From: Dimorphilus gyrociliatus
Lineage: Eukaryota; Animalia; Annelida
DNA: 64,000 bases
NCBI GenBank assembly: GCA_904063045.1
Contig: CAJFCJ010000008.1
Coordinates: 1,178,001-1,242,000, forward strand
Direction of reading: 5' to 3'
Each line of letters opens with the position of its first letter. Positions within the stretch are counted from its first letter, which is position 1. The notes beneath the pieces are model-generated. The model saw only the letters and a list, made by a program, of their open reading frames with translations. It searched no databases and was not told the origin of the DNA. This document shows positions 11,856 to 53,675 of this stretch, one piece after another. A program made the position numbers and the translations under genes.

Positions 11856-14539
11856 ATGCTGTCTCATTCATTTGTATTAATTTCATTGTGCATTGTCTTT
11901 GTAACCTGTCTTGAGCATCCTATTATTGAAACAAGTAATGGTAAAGTAAGAGGAAATACCAACAATATAACAGATGGTATATTTTAATTTTCTTATACTT
12001 TTTTATTTTTCAATATAAATTAATTTGAATTTAGATAAAGATAGAAACAATAAAAAATTATCCTTTCTAAGTATTTGGTCTGATAAAAATTTGCTATTTT
12101 TTAGGTAGGATCTATCATGAATTTCTTGGAATTCCCTATGCGGCTTCAACCGAGCGTGAATTTAGATTTAAGAAACCGAGACCGGTAGAAAGCTGGAGTG
12201 GAATAAGGAACGCTACTAAGTTTGGGCCACATTGTCACCAGCTTGTTGCCTTGTTTTATCCTGTATTGGGAATGGACGATGATGTCAGTGAAGATTGTTT
12301 GTCGTTAAATATTTGGGTACCTGGAGAATTAGACAGGTAATGAAATACAAAAATTACATCATATAAACAGAAATAAGCTAAGTGGTGTTACTTATTTCAT
12401 AGTTAAGAATTTATCTAGATCTGACGACAGATATCACTAATCTATACAAATTTTTATTAAAAATGTGCGCATCAAAGCGAAAAAAAATTAAAGGGAAAGG
12501 GATGGAAATTTAACTTTCATAACAATAGAACTATAGGAAATAAAGGAAAATAGGGAAAAAGCAAAGGACAGAAAAAGCTCCAATGAAAAGTAATTATGCT
12601 GTAGAATGTTTGGTCATTTATTTTTATTAACTAATTTTTAACATTTTACACTAAGAATCTATAAATTTTTAATATGCATATGACAAATGGATGTCCGCAT
12701 GACTTAATGCTTATTGATAAAAGAGTCAAGGGGGTTTTTATTATCATTTTCTTAATTTATAAATAGGTTAATTTATGGTCTTAGTGAGTAATAAAAGTTT
12801 TTTCCAACACAGCGGAAGGAAGCTACCAGTAATGTTTTATTACTTTGGAGGAGCGTTCATTTTAGGGACAGGCGCCATGTATCCAGGGCAAGATTTAGCC
12901 GTGCACGGAGACGTTATTGTTGTGACATTTAACTATAGAATTTCAGCATTGGGCTTTTTATCAACAGCACACTCTAGCGCTAAAGGTAATTGGGCTCTTT
13001 GGGATAGCAAAATGGCTTTGGAGTGGGTAAAACAAAATATTGGAAAATTTGGAGGAGATGAAGAGCAAATAACGATATTCGGCGAATCAGCTGGAGCAGT
13101 TATGACATCTCATTCAGCGACCAGCCCCCAAACTAGTTCACTAGTGAAAAGAGCCATAGCTCATAGCGGTTCAGCTAATGGATACTTTGGTGTTGTAAAA
13201 CGGGAACATATCAAGAAAGGAACTTTAGATTTAGCTTCATTTTTTTTTTGTGATGATGAAGATGATTTGCAACATACAGTCGACTGTTTGAGAGAGGAAG
13301 AACCTGAAGATATTGATCTCTTTGCTATACTAAGCCCTGTTATATTTGCTGGTACACTTCCCATTTGGTTACCCACTGTAGATGAGGAATTCTTACCTTT
13401 ACCCCCAAAAGAAATGTGGCAACAAGGCTATGGAAAGAACGTGTCATTTATGACTGGTAAATTGAAAGACGATGCTGGGGGTTTGATTATTTTGAATCCT
13501 CTAGGGTTATTTTATGAGGATGCTCTTAGCTTTGCAGGAGATAAAGAGTCTCTAGAATTTCTTCTCAGTTTAATAACAGCCGCTTATAAGCCAATTGACG
13601 ATGAAGTGGTCTTCTCGATTAAAGACAGATATCCAAATCTGAAAAGCGATGATTTTATTGAAAGAAGCAGAGCCGCTGTAGATATGGGAACTGATTGGTT
13701 CTTCGGAAGTGGTTCTTTCCTCGATGCAGTCTACCATAGTGATAAGTCAGATAAAGGAACATATAACTACGAATTGCAACACAAAATGACATTTTTAGAT
13801 TATCCGAAATATATAAACGGTTCACATGTTGATGACTGCTATCCTTTGTTCGGTGAGCCTTTCCTAGAAACTTTAAGGAAAGAATTGAAATGTGGTGAGG
13901 AATGGAAGGATGGTGATATAAAATTTAGAGATAATTTGAGAGCCTATTGGTACAACTTTGTTAAAACTGGGTAATTAAATATTTTCTATTCTTTATAAGT
14001 ATCTTATTCTCTTTTTAGTTAATATAAATTTTTTCTATTGATTAACAGCAATCCAAATAACGGTCCACATCCTATACCAATCGGATGGCCAACATTTAAC
14101 AATAGAACTTTTGCAAAAATCCGTATTACACAGGATATGGGAGCTTCAAGTATTGAAACTGAAAGTTCGGAGAAAAGGAATCTCTATAAATTTTTTAACA
14201 ACGATCTGTACATTGATCCACTACAAACTGCGAAAAGCTTTTCAACGAAATCTTATAGAAGAAGTTCTGAAGTAGAAAAAAGTAAGTAGTCTTGAACATC
14301 TACAATAATGTTTTGTATTAACGAAATCTTCTTTTTTTCCCCTTCTTTTACATATAGAACTTGATGCCGCTATTTCAAATTTGAAAAATATTGGCTCAAG
14401 AATGCTAAGGAATGCTCCTGAACAAAGAGAAAAATTATATAAAATTATAGAAAATGCTTTGAATAGACGTGAAGCTAAGAGAATAAAAATGAATAATAAA
14501 GCTAAGGATCAGGATATGAAGAGAAGAAAATTATCTTGA
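11856..14539 (+). CDS. Secreted type-B carboxylesterase/cholinesterase-family protein, about 641 aa with spliced tail
   Basis: Exons 11856-11976 (signal peptide, GKVRG), 12105-12336 (FLGIPYA, SEDCLSLNIW), 12813-13970 (FGGAF, NYR, GESAG at 13081-13095, GSHVDD), 14049-14281 (NPN...WP) and 14358-14539. Phases are consistent. The last exon is less certain because an unspliced stop lies at 14287-14289. Confidence 0.92.
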
Positions 14540-16190: not shown

Positions 16191-17378
16191 ATGGCAAGAG
16201 TGGGTGAAATATGGAAAAAATTAATTCTGGCGTGCTTGATTATTATAGCCATTCATTCAACTGCAAATTTTCTTCTGACTAAGGTGTCCAATACTACTAC
16301 TACTACTACAACTACATTAAACGAACGTGAAAAATCAGTACTTTTAAAATCGTTTAACAGAAAAGTTGATGGAACAATTGACGTAACTTTCAATCTTGAC
16401 GTTGAAAATGTGAAAAAAGAGACAGGAAAACAAATTACAATAAAGCAGACTACGGAGAAGGTCCAATACACACCCCATCCTCCTCCAACAATACCACAAG
16501 TGTATAGAGGAAATGACATTTGTGAGAAAAATAAGCCTACATTAATTATATATGTACATTCAGCACCAAATAATATTATACGGAGGTCACGACTAAGACA
16601 GACGTGGGCCGACAATAATCTGTTCAAAGATAAATATTTCCAGGTTGTCTTTGTCCTTGGGAGGCCGTCATCAGCATCTGTGCAAGAAAATATCGATACT
16701 GAAAATAAAGAATATGGTGATATTATCCAAGGTGACTTCAAAGATCAATACAGAAATCTAACCTTGAAAGCCATCTTTGCACTTAAATGGCTAAGAGATT
16801 CATGCCCAAGCGCTAAATTTGCTTTAAAAAGTGATGATGATGTATTCATGAACGTTTTTGAAATAAGGAAGTTAACTGAAGAAAAAAAGTATCAGGAAGA
16901 TGAAAAATTTCTTTTTTGTGCTTTTTATCATGCCAAACAAATGCCAATTTTAAGAAATCCAAAAACTTGTATGAAATGGTGCGTTGAAGATTACGAATTT
17001 CCAGGTGAAGTAACTTTTCCACCATACTGTGCTGGTCTAGGATTTTTATTAAAAACAAGTGCAGTTCCCTTCTTATTAGATAATGTCGCAAAAACACCAT
17101 TTTTCTGGATAGACGATGTATATACTACTGGACTTCTCGTTAAAAATATTCCAAATCTGAACATTATAGACATGTCAAAGAAAATTACTATGAATAGTAT
17201 TGAAGCTATTAAACTATATAAAAACAATGATAAAAGTTTAAGGGCACCAATTTTTATTCTCGTTTCTAGTGGTAAACAAATTAAAACACTATTTAAACTT
17301 TCTTATTTGAGGTTAAGTGATGAAGAGAAGAAAATTGTGAATTTTGACGTTCAAAAATATAATATTACAACAAACTAA
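16191..17378 (+). CDS. Beta-1,3-galactosyltransferase-like glycosyltransferase family 31, type II membrane protein
   Basis: Single coding exon of 395 aa. N-terminal signal anchor, Thr-rich stem, and motifs RLRQTW, GDIIQGDFKDQYRNLTLK, KSDDDVF (DxD), FPPYCAG and WIDDVYTTG. Confidence 0.95.
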   Translation: MARVGEIWKKLILACLIIIAIHSTANFLLTKVSNTTTTTTTTLNEREKSVLLKSFNRKVDGTIDVTFNLDVENVKKETGKQITIKQTTEKVQYTPHPPPTIPQVYRGNDICEKNKPTLIIYVHSAPNNIIRRSRLRQTWADNNLFKDKYFQVVFVLGRPSSASVQENIDTENKEYGDIIQGDFKDQYRNLTLKAIFALKWLRDSCPSAKFALKSDDDVFMNVFEIRKLTEEKKYQEDEKFLFCAFYHAKQMPILRNPKTCMKWCVEDYEFPGEVTFPPYCAGLGFLLKTSAVPFLLDNVAKTPFFWIDDVYTTGLLVKNIPNLNIIDMSKKITMNSIEAIKLYKNNDKSLRAPIFILVSSGKQIKTLFKLSYLRLSDEEKKIVNFDVQKYNITTN

Positions 17379-17817: not shown

Positions 17818-18654
17818 CTAAGAGTTTGAATCAATGTATAAACTAGACAAAACTTTGAATCGTGATGACATATTCAAATAAAATCTATAAAAAAGAGCTT
17901 TAAAGAATAGATAAAACAGCAATAAAACGATACACAACCACCTTAATAATGACGTCCAACATTCTTTATAAAATAAATTCAAATGATATTTTAGGACTCC
18001 TGCTCCATTTAAATGTGGATAAGAAACCTTTGGTATTGTTTTATTCAAAAATTTGCATAGTGGTTCCCAGCTATCACCAAATTTTAAGAAGAGAACGCGA
18101 TCGCTTGAAAGTTTCTTTTTTAAAGATGAATAGTGTTTAACGTACTTATTAATATAAATTGTTTTATTAACAATTTCTGAACCGTAAACATACTTTCTGT
18201 TAAGTCTATCGAGTTTTGTGAATTTGTATATCAATGGGTGTAAGTAACTTAAGAAGCTGCTCTCAAAGTAAGATTGGCTCAATTTGATGTGACTTGACCA
18301 GCTGTTAAACCACGATTCTTTATCTCTAACTGTTACCACAATTTTAGCTTGAGGAAATACACTTGCAAGGTCAACAGCAAAATAGGCAGCTGGGACGTCT
18401 GTCACTGAATCGATTCCTCTGTAAAGACTCTTCCAGTCAATGTCACGTTTTTCAAATTCTAAGACATCCACCCAAAATGCCAAACTTTCTCTTGCATGTT
18501 CAAGAAAATCATGATTCTTATAACCGAGTATCTTTAGAGCTCTAGATAAGGAAGTAGTACCAGTTTTAGAAAGTCCGGCTCCAATAACAGCCAAACCATT
18601 GATTAGATTGCATAGCTGTAGACAAAATAGGAAGTGACAGAGCAACTTGCTCAT
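17818..18654 (-). CDS. P-loop sulfotransferase-family protein (Sulfotransfer_4-like) with signal peptide and C-terminal TM helix
   Basis: Intronless 278-aa ORF with VIGAGLSKTGTTSLSRALKILG, TVRDKESWFNSW and DSWEPLCKFL...YPHLN, a hydrophobic N-terminus and a C-terminal LLRWLCIVLLLFYLFF. A probable 5'UTR intron has a GTAAGC donor at 18794 and an AG acceptor at 18659. Confidence 0.85.
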   Translation of the reverse strand: MSKLLCHFLFCLQLCNLINGLAVIGAGLSKTGTTSLSRALKILGYKNHDFLEHARESLAFWVDVLEFEKRDIDWKSLYRGIDSVTDVPAAYFAVDLASVFPQAKIVVTVRDKESWFNSWSSHIKLSQSYFESSFLSYLHPLIYKFTKLDRLNRKYVYGSEIVNKTIYINKYVKHYSSLKKKLSSDRVLFLKFGDSWEPLCKFLNKTIPKVSYPHLNGAGVLKYHLNLFYKECWTSLLRWLCIVLLLFYLFFKALFYRFYLNMSSRFKVLSSLYIDSNS

Positions 18655-19968: not shown

Positions 19969-23214
<3,246 letters not shown>

Positions 23215-31078: not shown

Positions 31079-34000
31079 TCACATTACAGAACATTTATTA
31101 TGAGCAGCTGATTCAAAAGATCCACCATGAGCCTTCCTCGCCTGCATCAGCAGTAAATCCGTTCGAATAGATGGCCTCCTAGCATTGGGCGTTACTGCCC
31201 CACAAGCGTCACTCATGCGACGTCTCATAGTCATTCGCCGCCGGAATGAATCTTTACAGCTGTCGTCCTCACTATCGCTGCTTTGTGATCGACGAAACCC
31301 AATAAAAGAGGGAGCCACCTTTCTATGGAGATTGGGAGACATTTCTGTGGGTAGTTTTGCCAGCATAAAAAGTTTGACAAATATTTCTTCAACGTTTATA
31401 TTTATTTTAGCAGAAGCTTCAACATTGGCACAGCCTGGAAAAAGATTAGCCAGTTCTCGAGCTTCATCTTCTCCTATTTCTCTTTCGTCCTGTTCACATT
31501 TGTTTCCAACAAAGACCATCGGAATAACAGAGCTTTTACTTTTACCCTGCCCAAGACGACCAACCTGTTGGGAAAAGAGATTTACTATTCCCTAAATTTG
31601 AAATTCCATTTTCTGCATGCTAAATACTATTAGGTAGACACCTGTCACATATCCAAATATTTGATTGAAAAGATACACTACACTTCCCCTTGTAAATACA
31701 TTATATTGGTTTCTTGTTTACATTAGCTATTTTATTCCTCGCAGTAAATAAACTTTTGCAAACAATAAATTGGTAAATTTTCACGTTTACTGATGTTCTA
31801 AGCTGTAATTAATAACGTCTACGCCATTGTCAATATACAATATTATAGAGCTTATAAGATACAGTTCTAAGAAATAAAATCGGTGATAATATTAAAAATA
31901 AGTGCCTCAGTAGATCCAGAGCTTTTTTCTATACAGAAGATCATGAACAATAAGATTTTGTACCTAAAAAGTAACAGGTATTGCTTTGTGTTTCATCTTA
32001 GAATGTAAAAAAAAAGGATTATATTTAGAATTAAATAGAAGTTTTCTCTCCTTTTCGTTAAATCTTTTCCACTTATCAATCTTTTTATTTGCTACTCTCT
32101 CTCTCTCTCTCTTACCGCCTACTCCCATTATTTTGTCTTTTTTCACTTTTTTAAAACCTTATTTACTATAGACCACTTTTTTTTACAATTCTTATTTATA
32201 GCTATTTCTTTTTTATAGTTTACATAGAAGAAGATTTAAGTAAGAAATGATGTCGTTCCGTAAAACTTCATCAATTTAGCATATATATGAGTCTTTTTTC
32301 AGAATATACTAATTTCTGTTTACGATATAGAAATTACACTTGTTTTTAACAAGATTCCCTGTCAAGTTACACCTGACAAACTTTCTACACTTAAGTTTAA
32401 AGCAGACCCTTGCAAAGCGCTTATTTTACTATTTTGTTGAAGTCTGTTCCAATTTCAAGTTTTTTGTTAAACTATATGCTTCTCCCCTAGCAAAAATACA
32501 AAAATATTGCAGTTGTATGAAAAATAGTTTTGCTACAACATATAACGCGCTGCGTTTGGGATAGGATATAACTAAAGATACCAAATCTTTACGCTTCGAA
32601 CGTGACTATATGAGTTCGACGGACTCTAACTGACAGCTAGGAATGGATGATTCTAAATAAAATAATTGCTATTGAACTTTCTTTTTTCAATACAAACATG
32701 TAGTAATTTACGATTGAGTGATAATCGTGTTACCCGAATTGAAAGAAGACAACTTGTATAGATAAACATAGGGTAGGTAGAATACACAAGATTTCTATAT
32801 ACTGAATATATGTTTACATGTATAAGTACATATAAATTATATATATATAAATTTATATTCAGTATTCATAATTTTAAGAGTGTATCAAGGCTTTTAAAAG
32901 ATCAATCTTCTCTAATATCATCACTCATTTTTGAAGGAATTATAAAAAATTTCCTATCTAAGCAGTAATTTCATATTGTAAACTGTAAAGTATTAGAAAT
33001 TTTCTCTTTATTTAAAAACTCTAAAAAGACAAATTAATGATCATTTTACATGCCTTTATCCATATGACAGCTAATCTCTTTCGAATAGTGAAATAATAAA
33101 GGATAAATAAACTATTAAGATTTAGGCTACGTCAATTCTAAAATTTAATTATCGTTTAATTATCATTTCCAGTTCGAAAGAGGCTGTTTTATCCTTCAAA
33201 ATACAGTTATGGTTGTTTTTTCTGAATTTCTTTGAAATTACAACAGAGTAACAAAAGTTTCTAGTTATGTGAGATTATTACATTTTGTTTGAAGGCTTTC
33301 ATTTAAAAAAGAGAATACAACTTTTGATATATGACTTGTTTTGTTATTTATAAAAGAAATTATATCTCATAAACAATACTTACACAAAAAGAAACTCTAA
33401 AGCTTTAGCCGCTATTAATATAGTGTTTTTTTTTCGAAAACTCGACTATCTCCTCCCCCCAACTGTAAATCTAAGCAGGAGTCTTCCACTTTCCTATTAA
33501 GGGCTGTTGTATTTTCAAAAAGAAATCTAGCACAATTTGTCTATATTATTTTGTTATTATTTTGTTTCTTTTATTTAATCAGCTAAAAATTTATAAACAG
33601 GAAGAGAAGATAAGGTTTTTGATAATTTATATATGTTTTTTATCTCTAAATATTTTTTTTTATTTCACCTTCTATTTAGGTAAAAACATTTAAAAAAAAG
33701 AAATCATTTTATGATGAGCTTATTTATCACTCTTATTTTTAATGGCTGTAGAAAGAAGAGGCGCATTTTTCAGCTTTTAATCTCAAGAATCCATGCTGAT
33801 AGTAAACTCATTAATTATCTTTAACTAGCATATATCTATATATATATATATATGTGTGTGTATATAGTATATATTCTGTATAGATAAAATTACTGCTATA
33901 AATAGTCATAATAATTCATAGTGCAAAAGCTTTGTATACTAAATATGTACTTTAATTTTGAAAATGAGTAATTATCAATGAAAATGTCGCATAGTAGATA

Positions 34001-45262: not shown

Positions 45263-48235
45263 CTTTTATAATAAATATTAAAAAAAACACAAGCATGAGA
45301 CGAATATAATTAGTGTTAATATGTTTAATATGGCGTTTCCTGTATAGTAACACTCCCAGTTTTTTATTTGCGGCTAAATGAAATATACAATTTTAAATAT
45401 ACTGTATAACAATACTACTTAAAGATTTATTATTTTTTTTATATATTATTAAACTCATACTAATTTACTAAATATAGTAAAACACCCAATTCATAGTTTA
45501 TTGACAATTTTTCTAAATCTTTTGCATAGTAAAGATTGCTCCTCTTATTTGTTATTTCACATTCTTTCAATTAATCATTCATCTAAACATAAAATATTCC
45601 AATGAAAACGGAAGAGGAGGAAGAAGACAATTAAAATTATTTAAGCTAAGTTCCACTTTTAAACATGATGTGAAAATGGCAAAAAATAACGCTACTTAAT
45701 TAGTATTTTTGTTTTTAATTAAATTTCCAAATCATTATAGTTATTAGAAGGAAATGGAAAAGTTCCTATGCAGTTGTAATTCAATAGACGAATTTAAGGA
45801 CGTTGCTGGGTAGCATTGCGTTTGATATACCTTTTTGTACAATTTAATTATGGTCCTAAAAATCAGGATAACGTATGATAAAAGAAAAGTATACTTAGGT
45901 AAAGAGTCGGTCTACTCATTTAGCATCAGGTATAAAGTTGTTATTATTGTACTGAGTTGGCAAAAAATTCATTTTCCTTCAGCCCTAATTTAGTCAAGTG
46001 ACTTTGAAACGGGTTTAGACCATTTAGGTTTTTTACCAATGAAAAATTTTGCCTCCTTAACTTAGTAAATCTCGTTTGTGAATGTATTAAAATTGTAAAA
46101 GAAATTTATACACGAATAATTGTGAAAGCTATAGATCAATTTTATGCTAGATAAGTCTCTCTTAAAAGTGTAAGGTTTGCTCACGTTCGTTACTGAAAGA
46201 ATGCTTATGAAACACTTTTATTCCTTTATTAAATTATTGAATCAAAGATAAAAAGAAAAGGAAAGTTTACAATAAACAAGGACAAAAAAATAAACGAACG
46301 TTTATAAAAGATAAAATTATGGACATTTGGGAAAAAGAGATACAAAAAAAGGCTATAGGAATAATATTAAATTTATTTATATTTCCATTTGTTCTGTAAT
46401 GAAAGTAATAAAGAATCCTGTACAGTTAAATAGTAAAAATTGATCATATTTTTTATTTTCAGCTCTAGTATACGCAGGGTAAAAATGTTTCTATAATCCT
46501 AGTTTTTTTGTCGATTATTTCAGTAGCCTTTACTTGCTTACAAATACCCTTCAGCTATAACAATGTTATCAAAAAATGATACTAATCTCCCAACATCAGC
46601 TTGCAACCGCAGCACCTTAGCGTATTTCTAAAATCCTTTGGCGGATTTTATTTCTGAGTACAGGTTTAAATAAAAGCAAATGTAGTAAATCTGATAAAAA
46701 AATTAATATAAATTTCACATACTAAGTTTAAATAGTATATATACAGTATATATATAGTTTCAATGATTATATTTCTATATGTACAGATAGTTTTGGTTAA
46801 CATCAGTTATAAAAGAAATATTGCGTAGTTCGAAATTGACTTATTCCTTTAAAATATTGCACTCATTTCCTTAGCCTTTAACCAACATGCAAAAGAATAT
46901 GGAAGCTTTGGAATGATGCAAAAAAATCGATTGAAGTCTATGCAAACGGGATGAGAACTCTAATGCTCATTTAAAAAGATTCATAACATTACTCTTTAGA
47001 ATTCAACGCACTAAAAAGACTGTTCGAGCATTTTGCGTATGTAATGTACTAATCTCGCATTTCCCTTATAATCATCGCACATGTCGAAAGAATAGCATTT
47101 CTTTTTTCATTAATGATTACCTTTTCTATCCGTAATAGTTATTTACATTTTTGCTCTTCATAGCTTATGATTTACAGTAATTACAGTTGAATGTACATAA
47201 AATATTTTAAAAATGGTATTATAAAAATCTGAATTCTCTTAGTTTACCTTATAAAGTTTTTTAAGATTTCTCAAAGACAAATAAAAAGATAAATTTACTG
47301 AAAAAGAAGAGAAGACTTTTTATTGTCTGATAGTTGTTTTTCACTTTAAAAAAGAGTACTGAAAATTGTCATTAGAAAAAAATTTATTTTTAGAATTCTT
47401 TCCCCCTCTCGGTCTCTCTCTCTCTCTCTCTCTCCCACTCCCACTCCCACTCATTCACTCCTTTCTCTTTCCCCTCTCTCTCCCTCTCTAACCCTCTCAA
47501 TCCCCTCTCTTTCTCTCTACACCTCTATCTCATTTTTTAACTATTATTCTATTCTTTCGCCAGTTTAGGTATATTTGTATTTGATGTTTCTTTAGAAAAT
47601 GCTGCAAAAAAAGTAATGACCGTTGGTTTTTTTTTATTTCTACTAGAGTTGAACAGGAAACTGTTAAGGGTTTGTCTGTACTAAAATCTTTTAGAAGTTT
47701 ACTTTTTGAAGTTTTTATCATACGTAACTTGTCTATATTAAAAGTATAAATATCTATTCATCTAAAGTATGATTATATTGGTTCACCCGCTTTGCAACCC
47801 TCATTAATAGCGTTCCGAAAAACAAATAATACAGCCTCTGATTTTCCAATGCTGGTTTTCAGAAATGAAAACATATATTTATAACATTTGAGAAGAGTAA
47901 AAACAAGAAAGTTAGAAATTTAAGAGCGCCAAAATAAAATTTTATCTGATTATGAAATTTAGTAATTAGTCTAATTTTAGCGAATTATTTTGTTGACCAT
48001 AGGAAGTTGTAACCGACATTAGAAGAGAAGATGAGGTACGAGAGGAAAGAAATAAAGAAAAAAAGTAATTTTTTTGGTTTTGAAATGAAGAAATTGCATT
48101 TCATAAATACAAAAGTGTACATTTCTATAAACTAAGGAAGTACGCCCCTTCTATTGGCTTTTTACTTTTGCAGACTTAGTAGTTTTGATGTAGAAGCCTA
48201 ATACTTTTTTGGCTATTTACAGGCATTCCGTTTGA

Positions 48236-48241
48236 TTTATT
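48236..48241 (-). terminator. Polyadenylation signal AATAAA of the peptide-precursor gene
   Basis: tttatt on the + strand, about 70 nt downstream of the TAA at 48313-48311. AATAAA is common in AT-rich DNA, so this is only supporting evidence. Confidence 0.45.
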
Positions 48242-48310
48242 GAGTTAAACGACTTGTACAGAGAGAACTACATTTATATTTCATTTTTCATCAGCTTTTC
48301 ATCATCCTGT

Positions 48311-49346
48311 TTAACCAATTCTGTCCAATAAACGAATAAAGTTGATCATATCCTCGTCTAAATTTTCGTTCGGATTACGTAAGAATGGATTTTGTCGTTT
48401 GCTAGCTGTTGATAACAAACAGATGTTCTATTAATCTCACTAATAATACGATTTGTTGATCGTTTTTATAAGAATAATTTATTAGGAAGAGTGATAACAT
48501 TAAGATAAGCTATGAACCATATTTAGCTCTTCTTTAGATAAAGATAAATGAAATTATTGAGAATTTGTCTCTAAATATAACAAAATGGAACGACTTGTTG
48601 ATTGATTAATAGACAGCATAATTTCAGCAGTCAATTTTTAAATAAATGATAGAAACTAAGAAAATTATATCTGAGTATTGCTTGTATGTATCACAGTAAT
48701 TAAATCGTAGATAGAATATCATCATTACTCAAAACACCTTGTTAATTTAATTTGTCAAGTTACACTAAATTTTAAAAGATAGTTTGCTTCCATTATCAAA
48801 GATTTTGTTTTTCATTTGTATAATTAAACAATTTCTAAAGAGATCACTTAAAAATATCATTCATCAGTACAAACCTCTGAGGCCAAGATTTTTCCAAGCT
48901 TTAAATAAACCTTTATGGCCTTCAACAGGAGCGGATTCCGCAATATAAACTGTAAAAAAGTAAAAGTAAGTATATAAGAAGAAGGAAAGAACCTCTAATG
49001 ATTGAAGCATGCTTATTGTATATTATTCGTAAAAAAAACTCAACTCTTGCAGCTTATAATAAAACTAATAAAGGGATATAGGAAACTAAAAGAAGTGGAA
49101 AAGTAGATTTTAGCCTAAGCAAATAAAAATAATGTAATTTTGTAGCAAAGAAAAACTTGAAATAGAAATATAAATACAAATAAATATTTAAAAAACATCT
49201 AAAATATTTGTAAAAATAAAAAGTATAAGAAATTAGATAGTTTTCAATATTCGTTTGTCATAATTTCTTTAATTACTCTATTCTCTTAGCTTACCGATGC
49301 AAAAAACGATTAAGAAAATAAGAATGACGCAAGTTAATTTGGTCAT
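48311..49346 (-). CDS. Small secreted peptide precursor (neuropeptide/hormone or antimicrobial), 73 aa
   Basis: Exons 49346-49295 (G|GTAAGC), 48949-48875 (strong ttttacag acceptor, G|GTTTGT donor) and 48405-48311 give MTKLTCVILIFLIVFCIVYIAES-APVEGHKGLFKAWKNLGLRAS-KR-QNPFLRNPNENLDEDMINFIRLLDRIG*. AATAAA lies about 70 nt after the stop. Confidence 0.75.
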
Positions 49347-50405
49347 TTTATTATTTTGTCCTCAAAGTTCGATTTTTAGTATAAATGTGAAAAATTTCAC
49401 CGACTCCAAGTTTATCTAGGTGGCGCTTTAGTGAGCAAAAAGATGCTATTAATCGTTTGATATACATTTCGTTAACATTAATATAAATGTCATACGTAGA
49501 TATTTTTGACACATGATAGTAAGATAAAGAGAAAGAATGAAAACTTGCTGTAGTTTGGTATGCTTTGATTAAACAATACAAAATATAATACTTTAAAAAG
49601 AAAAACTTGGAAAATGACCAGAAAATTCTCTTGCCAAATATAATGATAAAAGAAAAATAAGACAGTCATTAAGGAACAGTTTGTGAGAGAAGCAAACAAG
49701 CTTGCAAAATTTTCTCTTGACAAATTAAAGCCGTTAATAAGGCAAATCGCTCGTGGTTCAAGGCTAATTTAGTCTTATTAAGTGAAATAGGTTAAAGGCA
49801 TTTTATTAAGATTCCAGGTATATCCAAATTAGTTTGAATGTTAAAAGATTTAAATTTCGATATTAAAAAGAAAAGAGATATTCTATTAGTTTTCACATTG
49901 CATTATTAACTTCCTACATAAAACAGAAGAAAGAGTCAAAACACCTATGTAATTAAAAAAAATCTAGTCTTGTAAAGATAGCTGAACTATCTTATGACAG
50001 AAGAGTTACTGGGAAGAACGAATAGAGAAAAGTATAGAGTATGAGTTGAAATTGTTTCATTTTCAAGAAATTCTCAATATTTTACCTATACGATTGCAAA
50101 TACTGTATGTTTATTCTTTATAATGCAAAATTATGTATATAAATATATATTAGTATATAGTTCATATATATGGTATATGTAATTTAGTAAACAAAAAGAC
50201 TATGTATAATAGTTTTCATAATATTGAATGAAAACATCAAGTAAAGGTTTACAAGTAAAACTCCTTGGCTTAAATAAACTTAAAAAATAATAAAATTTCA
50301 TTTTTCTATTTGTTGTAATCGAAATATTATCTATAATAATATACTCGTGACCTACTACAGTATTCTAACTTCACTGTATATTCACTGGCAGAAAAGGGGC
50401 TATTT

Positions 50406-51909
50406 TCATAAAAGAGAGTTTATAGAGTCTCTTAAAATTTCGAAATCTTTTAAAGTATTATAAATCTGTACGGAGAGCCGGAACCAAAATTCCCCATAAA
50501 GATAGACAGCAAAAACTTCAATGTTGAATTTTTCTCGGAATTTTTTCTCAAATTCGACTGAATTTTCTGCGCTAAATCGACTCAGTTTTGGGACTTTTAT
50601 TAATGTCATACTTGGTGCTCTCATATCATCTGGAACATTAAAAATATCAGTTTTCCAAGCCTTTACCAACAATTGCCAACCATTTCTCAACAATGTTTTA
50701 TTATATTCGTCTATCTTTTTCTGAAAGGGATAAAATACAATTATTAACAATAAAGCTTGTTCGACAGGTGGCGTTATTATATCATGTAAAACATGCGCCA
50801 TCTATTTTAGGAATATACAGTAATATGCATGAAATTTTGCATTGGATGGCTATAGTAATACAAACAAGAGAACTATTTATAATTTATTGATTGGATTTTC
50901 GGGTTGATTGTTAGAAGATTCTAATTCGCTCCGACAGAATATTAAATAGATTTTTTCATAATGGAAAACTCATTTACATATACAAAAAAATGAAAAGAAT
51001 ACACATACGTTTCCTCCGCATTTATCAATAAATTTTCGTGAAGAATCCCAGCAGTACATTGGTGAATAGTCCCTCGTACCATAAAAAATAAATTGTATTT
51101 GAAAAGGCCTACTACCAAACCTTTGGGATGTATGAATATTTGAGAAGCAGTTATGATACTTCTTATCTACGTATAAAAGTCCACAGCCTCTGGGAACAAA
51201 ATTCCATTTATACAAGCTCCCAGTGTAAAAATCAGCGTTTAAATCATCTAAATTCAATTGAACTTGTCCTGGACCATGGGCACCATCGACTACTACTATT
51301 CTATTTTTAGATTTGCATAAATTCACCAATTGTTTTATCGGCCACAAGATTGGAACAGAACTTGATATATGATCTTTACATATGAAAACAGTCTTTCAAT
51401 AGTTAAAGGATTATTTCAAAAATCTAAAATATATATTAACCTACGAGAACCAATTTTATTCCAGGATTTTCATTTAAACTTCTTTCGTACAGATTTAAAA
51501 TTTCATCTATAGATTTAATAGGCAATTTAATATCCAAACTGATAACGTTAAGCCCTCTCAAATCCGCAATTCTTTCGGTAGCTCTTCTTGTAGCCGAAAA
51601 TGTAAAAGTTTGTAGCTGAGTATATAAAGATAGATGTGTATCATGCTAATTCAAACAATCTTTTAAAACAAACCAGAATGGTATCTCCAGCCTTCAAAGG
51701 GACCGACATTAGTATACTATTTATCGAATGAGTAGTACTTTCAGTCAAACATAAATTTTCTGCATCAGTCGCCACAAATTGAGCTATGTAATCAACTTGA
51801 TTTTTGTGCATTTTGAATATTCGCTTTCGGAAAAAATTTTCCGGATCTCTTTCTTGATCTCTGATTAACCTTTGAAGGGAGATTTATAAGTACTATATAT
51901 TATAAACTC

Positions 51910-51940
<31 letters not shown>

Positions 51941-52261
51941 CTTTGTATATTATATACATAAATATATTAATATATATACTGTATATATATATATATACTA
52001 ATATATCTATATACAGTATATATACTGCATACTCTATGATGTACATACATACATAAGATTATACTGTGTATATACTGTAAATATCTTTAATATATCTAAT
52101 AGTTTAAGTAGTTTAGAAAAATAAACTTTCACCGAAAAGGATTCTCACTTTAAACGATGTTCTAAAACGTCCCTTGGTAGCGAGGGATAAGCTGCATGGT
52201 TAAGGAAGATTACTTCTTTGTTTAATAAAAATTCACTTTTAATTTTCTCTCCAAAATCCAT
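50406..52261 (-). CDS. PLP-dependent aminotransferase class V C-S lyase (Egt2 / L-cysteine desulfhydrase / isopenicillin-N-epimerase-like), about 387 aa
   Basis: Exons 52261-52149, 51869-51674, 51615-51441, 51373-51009 and 50720-50406 total 1164 nt in frame. Motifs IFLNH, DHISS, VDGAHGPGQ, YTGSLYKW (PLP Lys), GTRDYS and WFRLSVQIYN. Confidence 0.92.
51975..52020. mobile_element. Two TATAC(A/T)GTATA motifs in a (TA)n tract, putative Tc1/mariner excision footprints
   Basis: tatactgtata at 51975-51985 and tatacagtata at 52010-52020. These are 2 of 14 such copies in the window. Confidence 0.5.
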
Positions 52262-53675
52262 CTTGTTCCAATGAAAAAAAAAATCAAGCACTGTTAGTTT
52301 TGGCCTTCTACTGTTTGGATGTTCAGTTATATACACTCTAAAATAGCTAATATAGGACATATCTATGGCATACTCGGAAAGAAGAAAAGTAGCCTTCGAA
52401 CGATCTAGGGTAGAGTATTATTTTTGCGTATAGTATTACAGAAGAAATCAAGAATAAATAAAAAATATAGTATCATTAAATGAAAAATATTTATTAATAG
52501 ATATAAATAGATAATAAAGCAAGGTGGCATATTTCTTAAGACTTTTAATTCTAAGCCTCTAAAGCAATGGAAAAAAAACTTTCCAAGTAAAAAACCTTTG
52601 TTAAAGATTCCAATGTTTTCTTCTTGGGGATAGGAAGTTTTCTATTAAAGGTTTTAATTAGCAAAAGATGGCAGCACGGCATATTTAAGAAATTCGCTAA
52701 TTATAGAGAAATGCACGCGATTCCGTGCACTCTTTTCGTTCTTTATTATCATCAATAGCAAACTCGTACAAAACGTTCGTTAGTAGGTCATAAAAGCATC
52801 TATATAAATGTAAATGCCTCTGGCAACCCTTAACAAGCTACAATTCTTAAAAAGATTTTCCTTTTTGTTTGTATTTACACTGAACAATTACATTGAAATT
52901 ACCTACAAACTGAAATAATTATGAATGGAGAGAGAGGGGAGTATTCGATGGCCACATCTCATTTCGCAGTTGGGTAACGCTTGTCAGTTTTTCCCCCACA
53001 CAAAAATCCTTTTATTTCGTCTCGAACATAAAAAGAATTATATATAATATGTACATGCATTTTTTTAGTGTATGAACTGTATATATTTAATATGGAATGT
53101 ACTGAAAACTGCAGTGTGCAGTTATGTACGACTAGTGAAAAAAATGTTCGATTTAATACTGGAAAGGCTGTAATGATCAAAATACTCTTTCGTTGACGGA
53201 CACATATGTCCTTAAAAGTCTGTTAATCAAGTTTAAACAAAGTAAAATAAATACGAAAAAAATATGACATAAACGTGTGACTAAAATGTTATTTTTTTTT
53301 TTACAAATCATCCTCCAATCTCTCTTTTTTCCCCTTTTGATGGTTTCTGACTATTGTGCACGTACTTCGTGTCAGAACACTTATTTGTTGTCCTTTCTAG
53401 ATTGTTAATTAAAATATTTTTATGGAAAATAATCCTAGTAATTATTACATTGATTCAAGTACATCTTATTTCTAAGCTAACGTGCTAAAGTAGATAGTAA
53501 AAAGCTGGCTAAAGCTTGGGCTAATTTAGGTGAATAAGAGGGGAGATAATGGAAAAAATCTGACGATTTAACGAAGCACCTAGAATTGGTTATTATGCTT
53601 TAGTAATAGCTGATCGATACAAAATAAGAAATTCTCTCCCTACTCTTTCTGTCTCTCTCTTTCTATTTCTCTTTC

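Follow-up and report, generated by a model that had tools for sequence, protein, structure and literature searches.

The question raised by this locus is whether the minus strand of a stretch of the Dimorphilus gyrociliatus genome carries a genuine small gene for a secreted peptide precursor and, if so, what kind of peptide the precursor would release. The window that we analysed is the whole stretch of 64,000 nt from contig CAJFCJ010000008.1 (assembly GCA_904063045.1, positions 1,178,001 to 1,242,000 of the forward strand), and all coordinates are positions within it. A reading made earlier from the sequence alone had proposed a hidden gene of three small exons with canonical splice sites and matching phases. 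When the minus-strand exons 49346-49295, 48949-48875, and 48405-48311 are joined, they remain in frame and give 222 nt, or 73 amino acids followed by TAA. The translation is identical to the one proposed, and both introns have GT..AG ends and lie in phase 1, so the exon structure stands as drawn. The ATG at 49346 (minus strand) opens a 52-nt coding stretch that runs up to a GTAAGC donor, the intron acceptors are AG with T-rich tracts before them, and the TAA lies at 48313-48311 (minus strand). The features of the gene are as follows, where X1 and X2 are two public runs described below.

49295..49349, minus strand: exon 1, from the sequence, its translation, and the X1 contig piece 49295-49349.
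48950..49294, minus strand: intron 1, 345 nt, GT..AG, phase 1, 22% G+C, with the joint present in the X1 contig.
48875..48949, minus strand: exon 2, 75 nt, from the translation and the X1 contig piece 48875-48949.
48406..48874, minus strand: intron 2, 469 nt, GT..AG, phase 1, 24% G+C, with the joint present in the X1 contig.
48209..48405, minus strand: exon 3, coding from 48405 to 48311 and then about 102 nt of 3' UTR, from the X1 contig piece 48209-48405 and the X2 contig 48226-48374.
48236..48241, minus strand: AATAAA polyadenylation signal, from a motif search; the X1 contig ends at 48209, 27 nt downstream.

Exon 1 holds an A-rich 5' UTR of at least 3 nt and then codons 1-17 plus 1 nt, which cover most of the putative signal peptide. 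Exon 2 encodes the end of this segment (...VYIAES) and the bulk of a cationic 21-mer, APVEGHKGLFKAWKNLGLR(AS). The introns, at 469 and 345 nt, are five to seven times as long as the species median of 66 bp given in the genome paper of D. gyrociliatus. According to the same paper, unusually long introns of this species often contain open-chromatin (regulatory) peaks. Rfam and repeat scans over the locus and both introns returned nothing of note, the single Rfam match in intron 1 being far under the gathering score.

Expression was assessed with two small public runs from different studies, placed on positions 48100-49600. A 337-nt contig of run X1 maps in three pieces to 49349-49295, 48949-48875, and 48405-48209. 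The junctions predicted by the sequence-only reading, 49295/48949 and 48875/48405, are both exact in this one contig, which comes from a run (2023) whose RNA label, "RNA?", is a guess. The contig skips 345 and 469 nt with CT..AC ends on the plus strand, corresponding to GT..AG on the gene strand. Run X2, recorded as metatranscriptomic RNA (a 2021 metatranscriptome), yielded a 151-nt contig over 48226-48374, covering part of exon 3 and the 3' UTR. The peptide gene is expressed and is spliced as predicted into an mRNA of roughly 340 nt. Its assembly from two independent small runs indicates that the transcript is not rare, with the qualification that contigs carry no expression level.

The contigs also differ from the window in sequence. 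X1 and X2 carry the same two differences in the 3' UTR (48253 and 48307), and X1 has three coding differences: G28D (48919), a silent change at L32 (48908), and N53S (48375). The shared UTR differences together with the coding differences of X1 indicate a second haplotype, other than that of the reference sample. Because the UTR differences recur in two studies, this is a common non-reference haplotype, present in public samples that include an environmental one. It leaves the Lys-Arg (KR) site, Gln47, Gly73, and the last 19 residues unaltered. However, of the three coding changes that separate the haplotypes, two (G28D and N53S) alter the protein, so that strong constraint is not apparent beyond the C-terminal part.

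The spliced RNA has the properties expected of a short message. Its 73-codon open reading frame (ORF) takes up 66% of the RNA and uses the first ATG, which has A at -3; the next longest ORF encodes 15 aa, leaving this as the sole long one. An in-frame stop codon precedes the ATG by 15 nt, and no upstream ATG is present within 120 nt. An ORF of at least 73 aa appeared in only 105 of 20,000 shuffles of the RNA (0.5%); at 28-35% G+C, frequent stop codons make long ORFs rare. The exons have 31-40% G+C, compared with 22-24% for the introns. We are therefore confident that the peptide gene is real and coding.

The gene is unannotated so far and is absent from the public annotation of D. gyrociliatus. 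An exact look-up of the 73-aa protein in a collection of 15 billion proteins found no entry, while the annotated neighbouring galactosyltransferase was present there. A word-based protein search gave no candidate at all, as no words were common to any protein of similar size. An exhaustive phmmer (HMMER) search of 1.84 billion representative proteins, which would also detect the 73-aa protein inside a longer gene model, found no relative and returned one artefact match only (P0002, E 3.8e-06). Pfam gave no match at E <= 10 for the whole protein or the 28-mer, nor did the PDB sequences, CRF-family peptides included, at the same threshold. In the JGI metagenomes, 230 pattern matches were obtained and none was confirmed. 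A tblastn search for paralogues within the 64-kb window found none, and no match from other dinophilids was found in the collections searched, which may or may not contain dinophilid data. A literature search with peptide fragments gave nothing relevant. The 73-aa protein is likewise absent from the published neuropeptide list of the species (PMC7854359, Supplementary file 5), which was derived by BLAST and cleavage-pattern scripts from transcriptomes and gene models (PMC7854359). Given this absence from the collections, from relatives, and from the published list, the description of the gene as hidden is correct. In a feature search of the ESM Atlas with the exon 3 product, the best match (0.88) was a bacterial DUF and peptide-hormone clusters reached 0.75-0.83, all below the trust level, which makes them no more than a lead.

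The phmmer match was rejected as a relative: it was matched five times via the signal peptide, and a single repeat gave no BLASTP alignment. P0002 has 443 aa and consists of five complete arthropod-type defensin precursors (Pfam Defensin_2) arranged head to tail, all five carrying a signal peptide of their own. The entry probably reflects a tandem gene array, or a repeated transcript, that was called as one ORF. Entries of this kind can yield spuriously significant summed scores for any query that bears a signal peptide.

The surroundings of the gene contain recognizable coding sequence of other kinds. Directly upstream, on the same strand, is an aminotransferase class-V-like gene at 50406-52360 (minus strand), with exon-sized ORFs at 50406-50801 (no Pfam match) and 50970-51347 (Aminotran_5, E 6.7e-10). 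Its stop at 50406 lies 1060 nt before the ATG of the peptide gene, and the two look like separate genes. An intronless ORF with a Sulfotransfer_4 domain (Pfam E 2e-50) is located at 17818-18654 (minus strand). The translation of this ORF from its first ATG is absent from the public protein collection, so the annotated model, if any, must differ in extent. Other features of the window are as follows.

12775-13974, plus strand: carboxylesterase ORF.
16191-17378, plus strand: intronless galactosyltransferase, annotated by NCBI on CAJFCJ010000008.1.
20246-20770, minus strand: tektin exon.
31079-31519, minus strand: Ras-family exon.

We then considered what the 73 residues would encode. The hallmarks claimed for a precursor, namely a signal-like N-terminus, a KR site, a Gln after it, and a Gly before the stop, are all present in the translation. 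The features on which processing would depend are as follows.

48395..48400, minus strand: Lys45-Arg46 (AAA CGA), the sole dibasic site, from the sequence; putative cleavage site.
48317..48394, minus strand: predicted 26-residue product, Gln47-Ile72, from the translation.
48311..48316, minus strand: Gly73 (GGT) followed directly by TAA, from the sequence; candidate amidation donor.

By a heuristic assessment, residues 1-23 are signal-like, comprising MTK, an 18-residue hydrophobic core, and AES/AP, with Ala at -3 and Ser at -1. Such signal-like ATG starts are found only four times on both strands of the 64-kb window (128 kb of sequence). Residues 24-44 form the basic 21-mer APVEGHKGLFKAWKNLGLRAS, which contains three Gly and one Glu and has a net charge of +2.9, in agreement with the value of about +3 given earlier. 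Residues 47-73 form an acidic 27-mer (net -2.2) with Gln first and Gly before the stop. The predicted 26-mer has a Pro-rich N-terminal third and a modelled amphipathic C-terminal helix (residues 57-72), and with pyroglutamate (pGlu) and amide ends its predicted monoisotopic mass is 3180.614 ([M+3H]3+ 1061.212), or 3153.603 in the N53S allele. For the 21-mer the calculated masses are 2278.270 and, with G28D, 2336.275.

An AlphaFold2 (AF2) model, built from the single sequence and indicative only at a mean pLDDT of 67, predicts helices at residues 2-23, 26-45, and 58-72. The predicted coil at 46-57 carries two prolines, and the KR site is held in this coil between two helices. The hydrophobic moment of the C-terminal helix is 0.65, significantly above shuffles (P = 0.016), and that of the 21-mer is 0.40, not significant (P = 0.08). 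The helical amphipathic pattern described earlier for the 21-mer is thus weak, and the AF2 helix at 26-45 is of low confidence.

On these features, we read the 73-residue protein as a prepropeptide, most likely the precursor of a lineage-restricted neuropeptide or peptide hormone, to which we give about an even chance. This assignment follows from the combination of signal peptide, KR-Gln, and Gly-stop, and from the Gly-stop endings of precursors already known from the worm, although such sequence hallmarks are weak when taken by themselves. By established secretory-pathway biochemistry, signal peptidase would cut after Ala-Glu-Ser23. A convertase of the PC1/3 or PC2 type would cleave after Lys45-Arg46, and an enzyme of the carboxypeptidase E type would remove the Lys and Arg. 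Gln47 would cyclise to pyroglutamate, and peptidylglycine alpha-amidating monooxygenase (PAM) would act on Gly73 to leave Ile72-amide. The active product would be pGlu-NPFLRNPNENLDEDMINFIRLLDRI-NH2, a 26-residue peptide in which a flexible, Pro-rich head precedes an amphipathic C-terminal helix; it may act on a receptor, most likely a G-protein-coupled receptor (GPCR). The basic 21-mer would more likely be a spacer or an associated peptide than an antimicrobial one.

The machinery for such processing appears to be in use in this animal. 7B2 is the chaperone of PC2. D. gyrociliatus has 7B2 among its accepted precursors (PMC7854359, Supplementary file 5), and these precursors include dozens of Gly-basic amidation sites (PMC7854359). 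Four of them, myomodulin 1, myomodulin 2, CCWamide, and tachykinin, have Gly-stop endings (PMC7854359, Supplementary file 5). Together, 7B2, the Gly-basic sites, and the Gly-stop precursors indicate that D. gyrociliatus clearly runs regulated secretory processing.

The layout is also that of precursors already assigned in the worm. Cerebrin/PDF 1 and 2 and DH31-like 1 (Martin-Duran et al. 2020, Supplementary file 5) are similarly small, at 80-90 aa compared with 73. They consist of a signal, a spacer, KR, and one C-terminal peptide of 17-30 residues with an amidation Gly. They differ in that no sequence similarity exists, and in that the Gly of the candidate is followed directly by the stop codon and not by basic residues. 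Identity with PDF/cerebrin itself was rejected: with the N[SY]G.LDAL... core of the worm PDFs, the best local alignment scored 16, below the mean of 17.5 for shuffles (P = 0.65).

A second family, the pedal peptides, was brought up by a short match. In spiralian data sets, one pedal-peptide-2 precursor contains a single LLDRIG hexamer, and pedal peptide 2 of D. gyrociliatus contains QLDRIS (PMC7854359). However, in pedal peptide 2/orcokinin-type precursors the motif starts a unit of 10-15 residues that has dibasic sites on both sides and is followed by xxL(L/I), whereas in the peptide gene LLDRIG ends the 26-mer and the stop codon follows. Because the context differs, we treated the match as chance and rejected a pedal peptide identity. 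None of the families tested fits, and the earlier statement that the peptide matches no named invertebrate neuropeptide family still holds.

A further step, which we put forward tentatively, is that the gene founds a family restricted to dinophilids and possibly newly arisen. The pGlu/amide product would have the build of a class-B-receptor ligand and would serve a worm receptor without a known ligand. In the boldest version of this proposal, the product replaces the DH44/ELH ligand that is absent from the published complement.

The alternative that survives best is that the protein is not processed at all. A single KR and a terminal Gly can arise by chance in a small secreted protein, and the product might be an unprocessed secreted or membrane-anchored orphan, perhaps encoded by a gene that is young and has scarcely any function, or none, in which case KR, Gln, and Gly are coincidental. 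The failure to find homologues among the 1.84 billion representative proteins agrees with this, as does the non-synonymous character of two of the three haplotype differences, and the long hydrophobic stretch of residues 4-21 could serve as an anchor. However, the occurrence of a signal, KR-Gln, and Gly-stop within 73 residues is typical of prepropeptides, and the AES motif is a good signal-peptidase site. The presence of the transcript in two independent small runs, one of them a metatranscriptome, also argues against it, since such a transcript is not rare. We regard the orphan protein as rather unlikely.

Host defence offers another way to divide the same precursor. The basic 21-mer could be the active, membrane-acting peptide, and the acidic 27-residue tail no more than a propiece that neutralises its charge and is cut off at KR. 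Such a layout of signal, cationic peptide, and acidic C-terminal propiece is found in fish piscidins and Ascaris cecropin P1. The worm precursor follows the same order of signal, basic helical peptide, basic site, and acidic tail. The 21-mer (+2.9) and the tail (-2.2) roughly offset each other in charge, and AF2 places a helix over residues 26-45. The sole library match, spurious as it is, fell on a defensin prepro region that has a similar signal and ends in LRA..KR. In contrast to piscidin- or cecropin P1-type peptides, the worm 21-mer is weakly charged, at just +3 and only +2 in the G28D allele. It includes three Gly and one Glu, and its amphipathicity (moment 0.40) does not reach significance. 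A tail that is a mere propiece needs neither the Gln start nor the Gly-stop end found here. AMP genes often cluster, but no tandem paralogues of this gene are present within the window. The resemblance of the 21-mer to antimicrobial peptides suggested earlier is therefore weak, and we consider a host-defence function improbable.

The sequence-only reading had also seen a loose resemblance between the C-terminus of the 26-mer and those of the CRF/DH44 family, from which it could be argued that the peptide is the CRF/DH44/ELH-type ligand of the worm, encoded in a single copy and highly diverged. A DH44/ELH precursor is missing from the published list for D. gyrociliatus (PMC7854359, Supplementary file 5). 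The DH44 peptides of Platynereis have 26-31 aa and a Leu-amide end after ..RLLxL (Conzelmann et al. 2013); the candidate is equally short and ends in ..RLLDRI-amide by prediction. Its likeness to Platynereis DH44-1 and DH44-2 would therefore comprise a length in range, a predicted amidated aliphatic end after RLL, and a modelled helical, amphipathic C-terminal half. By eye, the pattern P-F-x-x-N ... L-x-[DE]-x-M ... R-L-L is common to both. A single copy would be within the variation of the family, whose copy number ranges from 1 to 16 across phyla (PMC6425005).

However, this resemblance is at chance level. A profile HMM built from five short Platynereis DH44 copies scored the 26-mer at -0.1 bit, which was equalled by 4523 of 20,000 shuffles (23%). 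Global BLOSUM62 alignment of the 26-mer gave z = 0.47 (P = 0.30), compared with z = 9-11 for true DH44 copies. In the CRF/DH44/ELH family, conservation of the bioactive domain lies in its N- and C-terminal regions (PMC6425005). The candidate does not retain P-[LF]-S-[IV]-N, the motif at the start of the Platynereis peptides, and is also present in one copy versus 13-16. No PDB chain, CRF-family peptides among them, matches at E <= 10. Pfam is less informative here, as three genuine Platynereis DH44 peptides gave no hit either, so the negative Pfam result for the 26-mer says little. The gap in the published list could also reflect outright loss of the family, which cephalopods lack (PMC6425005). 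A diverged DH44-type ligand is thus a very unlikely identity for the 26-mer.

Least probable of all is that the transcript is non-coding or spurious and its ORF accidental, since, short as the RNA is and with a single contig supporting the joints, a frame that runs from the first ATG (A at -3), encodes a signal-like hydrophobic segment at its start, and occupies two-thirds of the RNA is of a length that shuffles of such AT-rich sequence seldom reach.

Taken as a whole, the locus holds a small gene that is genuine and had not been annotated before; as an orphan neuropeptide candidate it is credible, and its predicted precursor would belong to a known type of system and not to a new one. The genome of D. 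gyrociliatus is compact and well annotated, yet a tiny peptide gene was missed. That a transcribed and spliced candidate escaped both the annotation and the published list indicates that very small multi-exon peptide genes still evade detection. The gene supplies a concrete predicted peptide, defined by its mass, to look for. If the product is merely an orphan secreted protein, the significance is modest. If it is a true signalling peptide without relatives, it would exemplify the invention of a peptide within one lineage, in a genome that loss has otherwise shaped.
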